A stretch of DNA of 63,971 bases, counting the filler, from Olpidium bornovanus S191 (Eukaryota > Fungi > Olpidiomycota), in assembly GCA_017911155.1 (NCBI GenBank). It is 31 parts of 31 records of this genome, joined end to end, with 100 filler letters (N's around TTAATTAATTAA, not from the genome) between each part and the next. Parts side by side here need not be neighbours in the genome. Positions count along the whole stretch, not along the records: positions 57,483 to 59,584 come from JAEFCI010001227.1; positions 59,685 to 61,467 come from JAEFCI010011518.1; 29 more parts are not named here. One strand, written 5' to 3'. This document shows, one piece after another, positions 3,015-59,720 of the stretch. The notes under the pieces were generated by a model. The model was given only the letters and a program-made list of their open reading frames with translations, searched no databases and had not been told where the DNA came from. The first letter of the stretch is position 1. Every line of letters begins with the position of its first letter. The position numbers and the translations under genes were made by a program.

Positions 3015-3836
3015 TCCTAATCGCCAGGTTGAGCGCTGGACGCCCCCCCTTCCCCAGTCCGCGTTTCGCACTCTCCGTCCTGGAACCTGCTTCAAACTAC
3101 GATATGAGTGATATCCGTCGTTTACGAAAAACGCGCACACCTCAGGAGTTCGCGTCACAGGCAACTTCGAACGGCCGAAACAGACCGGCTTGTGGACCTG
3201 AATAGTTTATTTTGTCGCTCGGCTGGGGTTCGCGTCTGTACGGCTGCTGCTTCGGGACCACCCACTGTTCGTCCTCCGTTTATGGAATGAAGTACCCAGA
3301 GGAGGTTGCTGGGCCCCGTTATTGCGGGGAGGATGCGGCATGGAGAGGAAGGCGAGGTCTGAAGCAGGCGGCCGCGGCATCTCAACCTCTGGGCCGTCGG
3401 CTCGCCATGGACGCCACGGGTCGCCAGGTCCCGCAGATCAAAAGCGCTTGAGCGGCTGGCCTCATCAGTGAATCTTCGTTGCCAGTGAAGTCAAAAACCG
3501 GCCATCGATTCGGCTTACTCTGAAGCGGCTTCGGGAACGACGCGGCCGCCAGCGTTGGGCAATTTGCACTTGAACGCGCCGTTCCGCCGCTTTTGCACCA
3601 AATGCCGTCACAGGACTTTGCGGGGGAAGTCACTGCCGCCGCAGCGCAGGTGAGCCTGACAGGACGAGGCCGCAACGCAGCCCAGCGGCACCAGCGTCGT
3701 GCGAAATACTGCCCACCTCGGCAACGAAAGTCCCGGACGCTTTCGGAGCGGTCCAGCGGGGGAAGCGGGACAGGAAACTTTTATGGGGAAAGCGGGCTGC
3801 GGTTGTTCACTGGCACCGCAAACGGCGGTTTTTTTT

Positions 3837-57482: not shown

Positions 57483-58400
57483 GCTGCCGCTGCCGTTCGA
57501 GCCAACGTTCATGGTCCTGGTGGAGGATGGTGGCGAGGGTGGCCTTCCGGGCCTGCTCCAGCTGCCGGAGGCAGTCCATTCGGGCGGCGTAATGGTCAAC
57601 CTGTGCTTCCAAGTCGTGCGGAGCGAACTCCGAGTCGTTGTCCAGGGGTAGTCGTGGTTCAAACCCGTACTTCCAGAAAAATGCGCTGCCTCCCGACTGC
57701 GAGAGACGCCTGCTCGTGTTCACGCACCAAATGGCGTTGTCGAACACTTGTCCCCAACCGGCTCCCCGATCCAGCATCAGCTGGGAAAGCACGCGACCGA
57801 CTTCCTGTACTGAGCGCTCGGCGGCGCCGTTGGCCCGCGGATTATAGGCCGCTGTCCGACTGAACTTGATCCCGAAGGCAGTGGCAAGACGATTCCGAAA
57901 TGTGCGGCCGAATTCCCCTCCGCGGTTGGCGACCATCCGAATAGGCACACCGTGCTCGCGCACAACGCGTTGGAGGAGTGTATACAACGTTTCCTCTGTT
58001 GGTTTGCTCCTGGTGCGGTGGCCGACGACCCAGCCGGAGAGGCGTTCCATTGCGATCTGGAAGTAGCGAAAGCCCGCGGAGGGGGAAAGTGCCCCGCTGC
58101 TGTCCAAGTGCCATACCTCGAAGAAACCCGGGAGCGAACTCGATCCTTCCGACGGGGGGTCCTCGTCGCGCGGTTTCCCGCGCCGTTGACACACATCGCA
58201 GCTCTGGACGTAGCTGCGCACGTCCTCCTCGATCCCCGGTCAAAAGTAGCGCGCGCGGATGCAAATTAGGGACGACCCGCTCCCATAGTTCCCTCTAGAA
58301 TTGCCGTTTTCTTGCGTTCGTCGCAGCCCAGGACGACGCGGCGCGGCGGCCAGTCTGGTGTGCGCTTGTGCAGTAGCCCGCCGACAAGGAGAAACCGGGA
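57483..58400 (-). pseudogene. DDE retroviral-type integrase (zinc-binding region plus rve core), inactivated
   Basis: FLLVGGLLHKR...RRVV, IRARYF*PGIEEDVRSYVQSCDVCQ, WHLD, HGVPIRMVANRGGEF (D>N), TAAYNPRANGAAERS, W...NT...YG-EPRLP. Confidence 0.92.
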
Positions 58401-58544
58401 CAGACGATGATGGAGCCGGGACGGGAGAGTACTCGGTTTTTCCTGGTCTAACGCTTGGCCAATGGAGACGAGGTCGGAGTCCGCGGCGTTCAGGAGCGGA
58501 CTGATCGCAATTGGCGGATCGAGGCCGTTCGGCGTTCCGGCAGC

Positions 58545-58970
58545 GGAGATGCGCACCGCCAGCACCGGCCATCTCGGACTGCCAACTGCGATCCGGTTGT
58601 CCGTGTAGCCAGGGAGAAACAGGTCAAAATCGCGAGGGAGGGCGACCGGGGTGTCCATAGCTTGCCGCAAAACGGTGGGGAACCAGGGCGCGGTCGTCCA
58701 GGCGGGGATCAGAAGGGTCAACGTCGCACCATCCGTTTGCACCTTCGAAAGGATGCGGAAAAACGTGTCCGTTTCGAAAGGGGGATTCGCCCACGCGTTT
58801 TCGGCGGACCAGTCGATGGAAAAGGCGTCAACGACCGCTCCCTCCTCAGGAACGGCAGAGGCAAAACGGGAAAGCTGGCGATTTCGTGTGGTGGCGAACA
58901 GATCGATCGTGTGGGGTCCCCACCGTGCGTCGATAGCGCGAAACCACGCCGGGTAGAGCTTCCAGTCGGA
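58545..58970 (-). CDS. DIRS/phage-Dam-type N6-adenine DNA methyltransferase domain
   Basis: SDWKL, RWGPHTIDLFAT--N-QL-RF-S, DAFSIDW, catalytic WANPPF (58776-58787), LLIPAW--APWFP. No stops in the domain. Confidence 0.9.
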
Positions 58971-59189
58971 GGTTGAAGTGCGTGCGCGTGCACGGAGGGC
59001 AAACCAATCGGTGTCAATGACGTCGTCGCGGGGAACGGAAGACGTGCGCAGAATCGTCGGAACAAAACATCCCTCGGGGGGGGCGAAGAACGCCCCCAAA
59101 ATCATCATTTAGCAGAACGTTATCCTCCACGCCGTCGTCGAGCAACCCGACATCCTGCGGCCTCTCCCCCTCCTGCTCGTAGACGGGGT

Positions 59190-59583
59190 GGAGACGGGAG
59201 AGCGTGTCCGCATCGCGATAGCAGGCAGCGCTGCGTTGGCGGCAGTCGAAGGGGAAGTCAGCCAAGAACATTACCCAGCGGGCGAACTTCCCACTCAAGT
59301 CCGGCTTCTTGATTAAGTCGACAATAGCGGTGCAGTCGGTCCATAGTATAAACGGATTATGGAGAAGATACGGGCGGTATTCCCGGCAGGCGCGAACGAC
59401 GGCAAGGCATTCCCGCTCCGGCTGGCTGTAATTCTGCTCCGTACGCGAAAGGTTCCAGCTGCTGTAATAGCAGACGCGGTGGTGGCCGCTGTCGTCGCGT
59501 TGGTAAAGGTTTCCGGAAATGGCGCGCGGCCCGGCATCCACCGCCAACTCAAAGGGACGACGAGGATCGGGGTGCGTGACGAC
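59190..59583 (-). CDS. Ty3/Gypsy-type RNase H of pol
   Basis: VTHPDPRRPFELAVDA, EQNYSQPERECLAVV, PFILWTDC, KFARWVMFLADF, DADTLSR. Confidence 0.92.
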
Positions 59584-59720
59584 CNNNNNNNNNNNNNNNN
59601 NNNNNNNNNNNNNNNNNNNNNNNNNNNNTTAATTAATTAANNNNNNNNNNNNNNNNNNNNNNNNNNNNNNNNNNNNNNNNNNNNCATGACGTTTGCCGCG
59701 AGAGTTCCGCCAACGCGGAC

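Follow-up and report, generated by a model that had tools for sequence, protein, structure and literature searches.

The closest described relatives of the element reported here are the "DAM-LTRs", long terminal repeat (LTR) retrotransposons outside the DIRS group that carry Dam domains (Fernandez-Moreno et al., bioRxiv, 22 May 2026, 10.64898/2026.05.21.726589). The preprint describes at least four transfers of Dam from DIRS into Ty3/Gypsy elements and five lineages of the product: Chlorophyta chromovirus-like, Chloro-Ochrophyta, ichthyosporean, Pyropia, and Euglena. DAM-LTRs carried more N6-methyladenine (6mA) in three species and were more highly expressed in two ichthyosporeans. In the model of its authors, the methyltransferase (MT) marks replication intermediates, which lets the host AMT1 hold new insertions in a permissive chromatin state. 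DIRS1-like elements have the same MT family, adjacent to RNase H (RH) in pol (PMC3783388); they have neither a protease nor a DDE integrase, rely on a tyrosine recombinase, and carry the MT at the end of the pol open reading frame (ORF). Here, we analyzed a 63,971-nucleotide stretch of Olpidium bornovanus S191 DNA (GCA_017911155.1; hereafter the window), in which positions 57,483 to 59,584 come from the record JAEFCI010001227.1 (the window piece). The window piece very probably represents the RH-MT-integrase (IN) part of pol from a degraded Ty3/Gypsy copy of O. bornovanus, in which a DIRS-type MT module of about 195 amino acids (aa) was inserted between RH and the IN zinc finger, which would make it a fungal member of the DAM-LTRs. 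Olpidium is the zoosporic lineage closest to the terrestrial fungi.

The minus strand is the coding strand of the window piece, with a GC content of 61.8%. By translation and Pfam search, it encodes a Gypsy-type RH, a Dam-like MT, and a DDE IN in this order. The original prediction, made from the DNA sequence alone, had named the same three domains in the same order on a single strand, and we confirmed this. The domains are laid out as follows:

59254..59568, minus strand: Ty3/Gypsy-type RH (Pfam RT_RNaseH, 4.2e-28, 98 bits, profile positions 1-105 of 105)
59583 to 59017, minus strand: RH-bearing ORF, open to the piece edge at 59583, with its stop at 59014-59016
59108 to 58269, minus strand: MT ORF, 280 aa (58266-59108 including the stop end), matching Pfam Dam PF05869
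58494..59021, minus strand: N6-adenine MT domain, Dam-like, DIRS-type (Pfam Dam; motifs IDLFAT, VDAFSIDW, NPPF, APWFP)
58269..58406, minus strand: pre-integrase segment and start of the HHCC zinc finger (RFLLVGGLLHKR...RRVVLGCDERKKTAILE), translated in the MT frame
57483..58239, minus strand: DDE IN, comprising the zinc-finger end (CDVC) and the catalytic core (Pfam rve), truncated by the piece edge

The MT ORF matched Dam PF05869 at 2.3e-10 (40.8 bits against a gathering cut-off of 28.1), and every MT string that had been read by eye (IDLFAT, VVDAFSIDW, NPPF, APWFP) is present in it. Its frame runs unbroken into ...RFLLVGGLLHKRTPDWPPRRVV and on into RFLLVGGLLHKRTPDWPPRRVVLGCDERKKTAILE, the Gypsy pre-integrase segment with the start of the HHCC finger, just as had been claimed; this segment is homologous to KRFTLMNGILYR of P0193, a metagenomic Gypsy pol that lacks MT. 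The IN ORF shows the motifs CDVC, HLDSSG, VANRGGEF, and NGAAER, and its rve match (2.1e-7, 31.6 bits) lies just below the cut-off of 32.6. The claimed CxxC is present as CDVC, and the second catalytic residue of this copy is Asn. The three parts do share one contig and one strand, and what went unmentioned is that they sit in different frames (RH and IN in frame 1, MT in frame 2). Between RH, MT, and IN, which fill the 2.1 kb, we found no additional element; the other ORFs on both strands are short, overlapping, and of no note. The observed RH-MT-IN arrangement is confirmed as real.

The breaks between the frames are lesions of the window copy, which we located mainly by comparison with L002, a second O. 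bornovanus contig:

59076..59083, minus strand: frameshift 1, between RH and MT, a G8 run (plus strand) that is one base longer than in L002, from alignment
58290..58300, minus strand: frameshift 2, caused by the loss of 19 bp near 58295 within the HHCC zinc finger, from alignment with L002
58240..58242, minus strand: in-frame TGA replacing the Trp of ...RYFWPG, where L002, P0007, and P0151 have W
about 57925-57927, minus strand: Asn for the second catalytic Asp of IN, in VANRGGEF, from translation and copy comparison

Over 2076 bp, L002 is collinear with the window piece and shares 94% identity with it; the two differ by 98 substitutions and 5 indels (window 57483-59584 against L002:69-2156). 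It is open at every lesion of the window piece: RH passes into MT in one frame, reading ...DDFGGVLRPPEGCFVP..., and MT, by way of a complete HHCC finger, continues in one frame to the IN core. L002 has lesions of its own, namely a stop (ARW*PHTIDLFAT), a 1-bp deletion after NPPFETDTF (about 58763), and a 5-bp loss near 57900 in IN, and the window piece is open at these sites. Each lesion being private to one copy, the alignment shows that the common ancestor of the window piece and L002 had a single, continuous RH-MT-IN reading frame. The window copy itself is, judged by these lesions, a pseudogene unable to make any of its proteins, with the MT domain left intact. The change of the second IN Asp to Asn, of the GAC-to-AAC type, recurs in the two subfamilies of the element: it is also present in the otherwise open ORF of contig L001, while L002 and P0007 keep Asp. 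The annotated protein of L002, KAG5463041.1 (P0001; L002:25-1938; 509 aa), is a spliced gene model hopping over the stop and the frameshift of this contig, and its "introns" cost the annotated MT domain its N-terminal half.

With the MT ORF as query, exhaustive HMMER searching returned 6404 homologues at E ≤ 1e-3, and the three closest are O. bornovanus proteins (KAG5463041.1, KAG5459464.1, and KAG5461086.1, all from the metagenome-derived assembly GCA_017911155.1). The zoosporic fungal host supposed in the original prediction is thereby borne out. Further homologue searches with the MT ORF and with P0151 gave 2 and 3 matches, mostly Olpidium paralogues, and a scan of metagenome contigs with the MT ORF gave 82 pattern matches, none of which was confirmed as a relative. 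A second Olpidium subfamily (P0007, and P0151 on L001), about 65% identical, has the MT C-terminus followed by Integrase_H2C2 and rve in one ORF. The sister copies match Integrase_H2C2 at 1e-15 and 8.5e-14 and rve at 33.6 bits, over the cut-off; in L002, P0007, and P0151 alike, the pre-integrase frame continues through Integrase_H2C2 into rve. The search for other copies that the original prediction had called for thus recovered both junctions in their ancestral frame in L002, and the MT-IN junction within one ORF in the second subfamily. Comparing the second subfamily with the window piece over the MT C-terminus and linker, we obtained a ratio of nonsynonymous to synonymous divergence (dN/dS) of 0.23, with dS near saturation, which indicates that purifying selection acted on the junction region during the divergence of the subfamilies. 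For IN, dN was 0.23 and the synonymous sites were saturated.

L001 also gives a view of what follows pol. Downstream of its IN stop there is a purine run and then a non-coding stretch of about 1.7 kb, in which a TATA-like box lies near 3040. L001:1379-4122, 3′ of the IN stop, also includes a pyrimidine-rich tract and GGGGAGGGGGA near 1500. The sequence ...TTACA is directly followed, at 3195, by TGGTAGCAACGC, which we take to resemble an initiator-tRNA primer-binding site (PBS); ARAGORN, run to check this putative PBS, detected no tRNA on L001, L002, or L003. About 1.9 kb past the IN stop lies a gag ORF (Retrotrans_gag 1.7e-13, Ty3_capsid 3.4e-7). This Ty3-type gag is decayed by a frameshift and a stop, and its CCHC knuckle lies at the contig end. 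The layout of L001 is probably IN-LTR-PBS-gag, with a single LTR copy from which the boundaries were guessed.

We tested the Gypsy nature of the backbone with RH, as reverse transcriptase (RT) falls outside the window piece. In a phmmer search against 152 MT-bearing proteins, the window RH matched only those that also carry an integrase, i.e., the LTR-type RHs, and gave no match among about 130 DIRS-like RT-RH-MT proteins. Consistently, it scored 98 bits against RT_RNaseH, versus at most 21 bits or no match for the three DIRS-like representatives scanned. The RH phylogeny, another analysis that the original prediction had proposed, bore it out: DIRS-type and Gypsy-type RHs were split at 100/100 support, with the window piece on the Gypsy side. 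Its nearest RHs belong to ordinary Gypsy pols, and its sister is P0193 (100/94; 100/97 in a reduced set), which is 53% identical in RH. The IN of P0193 is also by far the closest to the window IN (E 4e-39, 36% identity over 196 aa). P0193 lies on a 10.7-kb contig (L004; ENA metagenome ERZ25039592 contig_20208) in which tblastn with the MT found no match, and its genome has 39% GC versus 58-62% in the window piece and the Olpidium contigs. From the RH end to the pre-integrase motif there are 62 aa in P0193 versus about 259 aa in the Olpidium element, and from RH to CxxC, 130 aa in P0193/L004 versus 323 aa in the window element. The absence of MT from P0193, together with this shorter gap, indicates that an ordinary Gypsy pol gained the MT as an extra module of about 195 aa.

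The MT has a different history. The best 150 of the 6404 homologues are all MT-bearing proteins, or fragments, of the eukaryotic transposable element (TE) type, and most homologues are DIRS-like proteins with a C-terminal MT. In a tree of 62 MT sequences, built without prokaryotic Dam outgroups, the window piece fell within a clade of 15 (95/94), apart from the other 47 representatives, nearly all of which are DIRS-like with the MT at the C-terminus. The MT phylogeny called for at the outset thus places the domain within the DIRS-type family, grouped with the MTs of other LTR elements. The five other representatives that have the MT between RH and IN are all in this clade: P0074, P0089, and P0137, metagenomic elements with a chromodomain; P0146, from Abeoforma whisleri; and P0069, a relative of P0146. 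P0037, an RH-MT fragment related to P0069, and a few odd architectures also belong to it. The AU (approximately unbiased) test rejected the grouping of every MT-carrying LTR element into one RH clade (p = 0.0035), for a group defined by architecture but after a first tree had been seen. The MT and backbone histories hence disagree, which fits repeated capture of the module, or its transfer between elements.

The sister of the window MT (86/90) comprises another Olpidium MT, P0025, and a metagenomic relative. P0025 (KAG5459425.1; L003:161-2455 of JAEFCI010006863.1) is a 764-aa ORF with a dUTPase (PF00692, 2.8e-25) followed by the Dam-like MT; the 310 aa before and the 170 aa after this pair had no Pfam match. 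By its predicted domains, it is a second MT architecture in the Olpidium genome. A reading by eye of the C-terminus of the L003 ORF as a protease (LLDTAS) was dropped, there being no Pfam match. Elsewhere in the clade of the window piece, P0109 has its MT linked with an Exo_endo_phos (APE-type) endonuclease, and P0102, P0111, and P0133 have long tails with no Pfam match; outside the clade, P0101 has RT, RH, and IN with the MT about 400 aa past the integrase, at the C-terminus. The MT module seems, from these architectures, to move between several retroelement types.

In the window MT, all positions that are invariant or nearly so in an alignment of 80 family sequences keep their residue, including D40 of IDLFAT. 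An AlphaFold2 model of the domain (m6eccb3e4bd65; window 58494-59021), computed on the family alignment, is of the Rossmann type and confident, with a predicted local distance difference test (pLDDT) score of 89.7 and a predicted template modeling (pTM) score of 0.83. The modeled fold and the catalytic motif argue for an N6-adenine methyltransferase, the activity being predicted. A feature search of the ESM Atlas returned only scores below 0.8, which were not usable. In summary, the predicted proteins and their comparison show the domain order, the single ORF of the ancestor, the Gypsy backbone, and the DIRS-family MT that has kept its NPPF and other conserved residues.

How such a module might serve the element can be outlined as follows. 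The MT would be made as part of Pol, travel with RT and IN, and methylate adenines on the nucleic acid of the element itself. If the complementary DNA (cDNA) or the RNA:DNA intermediate were methylated, new insertions would bear 6mA, which in other early-diverging fungi is associated with active genes. We give cDNA or the RNA:DNA intermediate a little under an even chance of being the substrate. A domain that only binds, with no catalysis, we consider unlikely.

The same architecture would also accommodate an MT that acts on RNA, e.g., by N6-methylating the cap-adjacent adenosine of the element transcript, as PCIF1/CAPAM does on mRNA. Such methylation could alter the stability, translation, or packaging of the transcript. 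By analogy with PCIF1, element RNA is a possible substrate, on the unlikely side in our judgment. Performing Foldseek with the MT model, we found PCIF1/CAPAM as the best solved fold (E 1e-5, probability 1.00, TMq 0.56-0.67), and VIA-align, run independently against representative structures, likewise ranked PCIF1 first (Z 11.7), with all others at or below 9.1 (T4 Dam 8.8, EcoDam 8.5, M.TaqI 8.4). The MT and PCIF1 share a (D/E)xFA...NPPF layout; the family profile has a marginal match to PCIF1 in the PDB over the DLFA...NPPF stretch, and one DIRS-type relative matches Pfam PCIF1_WW at 3.5e-4. Iyer, Zhang, and Aravind (2016; PMC4738411) placed the DIRS1 MTs in the PCIF1 clade, and the failure of eukaryotic DAMs to produce 6mA in E. 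coli DNA (10.64898/2026.05.21.726589) points the same way.

By sequence, however, the MT matches the phage-type Dam PF05869 and gave no match to PCIF1_WW at E ≤ 1, and a sequence search against PDB chains gave none at all. The top rank of PCIF1 may reflect the fact that PDB searches returned no match of the PF05869 family. PCIF1 is a cellular enzyme that works on RNA, has a WW and a helical cap-binding domain, and is 15-18% identical to the window MT, which has the PCIF1/CAPAM-type MTase fold in its model and is flanked by RH and IN. No PCIF1 WW domain turned up in Pfam scans of the three ORFs of the window piece, where the cap-binding helical domain was not specifically sought. Moreover, DAM-LTR copies have more 6mA than other LTRs in three species (10.64898/2026.05.21.726589). 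The origin of the family is drawn differently in the two papers: from cellular PCIF1 according to PMC4738411, and from a single acquisition of prokaryotic Dam, with the N-P-P pocket conserved, according to the 2026 preprint. On this point, our fold search, made with the predicted model, favors PCIF1 structurally, and the sequence profile favors Dam.

With regard to the architecture, the window piece might be read as a nested DIRS element, or an RH-MT fragment, lying in or next to an unrelated Gypsy integrase, so that the domain order would be an accident of insertion. RT-RH-MT is the usual order of DIRS pol, and the prevalence of DIRS-like proteins with a C-terminal MT among the homologues speaks for such an accident. 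Against it stand the Gypsy-type RH, set off from the DIRS type by its 98 bits and by the 100/100 branch; the same junctions in the 94% copy; and the MT-IN junction in the 65% subfamily, under purifying selection. In addition, the 2.1 kb filled by RH, MT, and IN leave no room for remnants of an RT, a tyrosine recombinase, or terminal repeats; no tyrosine recombinase match appeared in Pfam searches of the three ORFs; and the RH-MT-IN order recurs in Abeoforma and in chromoviral elements. We regard an accident of this kind as very improbable. A chimeric contig built from DIRS-like and Gypsy-like repeat reads is hardly credible, for although the source assembly is highly fragmented and metagenome-derived, and repeats are prone to collapse, L002 is a separately assembled, diverged contig that is collinear across 2.08 kb, two more contigs cross the MT-IN junction, and a reading frame spans both junctions. 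Nesting and misassembly had been named in advance as what would undo the original prediction, and neither was borne out; the comparison of copies indicates that the hybrid architecture is real, and the claim of a Gypsy element with a DIRS-type MT is supported.

Several points weigh against the reading of the window piece as a fungal DAM-LTR with a working MT. The Olpidium host assignment relies on a metagenome-derived assembly. Among the Olpidium contigs, all at most 4.1 kb, we found no full-length copy, RT, protease, or LTR pair of the family, and the LTR boundaries of L001 come from one copy. Every copy seen that has the MT core is broken. The DIRS1 MTs were thought likely inactive by Iyer et al. 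(PMC4738411), and in the E. coli assays of the preprint, eukaryotic DAMs brought no gain of 6mA.

In its features, the Olpidium element agrees with the DAM-LTRs: a Ty3/Gypsy pol with a DIRS-derived PF05869 Dam between RT/RH and IN (in frame with the pre-integrase segment, and with RH in L002), a Gypsy RH, a DDE IN with HHCC, an MT of the eukaryotic TE clade with a conserved N-P-P catalytic triplet, and an MT phylogeny incongruent with the backbone. Its MT shares the 95/94 clade with P0146 of Abeoforma whisleri, an ichthyosporean species covered by the preprint. It departs from DIRS1-like elements in its Gypsy-type RH, in the DDE integrase that follows the MT in frame, and in the Ty3-type gag nearby. 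P0193/L004 offers the closest RH and IN and the same pre-integrase segment, with no MT. In contrast to the five lineages of the preprint's main text, the host here is a fungus (Olpidiomycota), and the RH backbone is neither ichthyosporean nor chromoviral and is sister to an MT-less Gypsy. As the window IN is cut before its C-terminus, the chromodomain check rests on the second subfamily: no chromodomain was detected after IN in P0007 (Pfam scan, H2C2 and rve only) or in the complete IN C-terminus of P0151/L001 (precomputed Pfam matches, again H2C2 and rve only).

The original prediction had supposed the arrangement to be undescribed; this novelty claim fails, as both the architecture and the idea that 6mA mimics active chromatin are found in 10.64898/2026.05.21.726589. 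Apart from it, full-text literature searches returned no earlier description of the design and nothing on Olpidium transposons or 6mA. Neither fungi nor Olpidium are mentioned in the main text of the preprint or in one supplement file, a coverage that leaves aside its figures and supplementary species tables. What remains as new is limited: the host is a fungus; the backbone differs from those of the lineages described so far and has its closest relative in an element lacking the MT; and the same genome holds a sister MT in a second architecture.

PMC12695648 counts early-diverging fungi among the eukaryotes with robust 6mA signals. For cytosine methylation, we looked at the substitutions between the window piece and L002. 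Of the 78 transitions, 46 lie at CpG, amounting to 9.5% of CpG sites, and 1.3-4.7% of the other CpN sites have changed, CpA being the lowest; CpG observed/expected is still 1.21. From its sequence context, the pattern looks like deamination of 5-methylcytosine (5mC) and not like repeat-induced point mutation, which we rejected as the source of the transitions since CpA sites change least. These CpG-centered substitutions hint that the elements were targeted by 5mC all the same.

DAM-LTRs have been proposed to take advantage of active chromatin that bears 6mA, and fungi are nonetheless unnamed among the five lineages of the preprint's main text. We tentatively suggest, with somewhat less confidence than an even chance would warrant, that the Olpidium element represents a sixth, fungal DAM-LTR lineage of separate origin, in which an LTR-associated DIRS-type MT entered an ordinary Gypsy backbone and a sister MT was reused after a dUTPase, the MT being perhaps a PCIF1-like writer on element RNA or replication intermediates and not a classical dsDNA Dam. 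The link to PCIF1, in structure and in the literature, sharpens the question of the substrate, be it DNA, RNA:DNA hybrid, or RNA. If fungi hold a lineage built on a Gypsy backbone of its own, this would be one more independent acquisition or transfer of the MT, and would extend the phenomenon to Olpidium.

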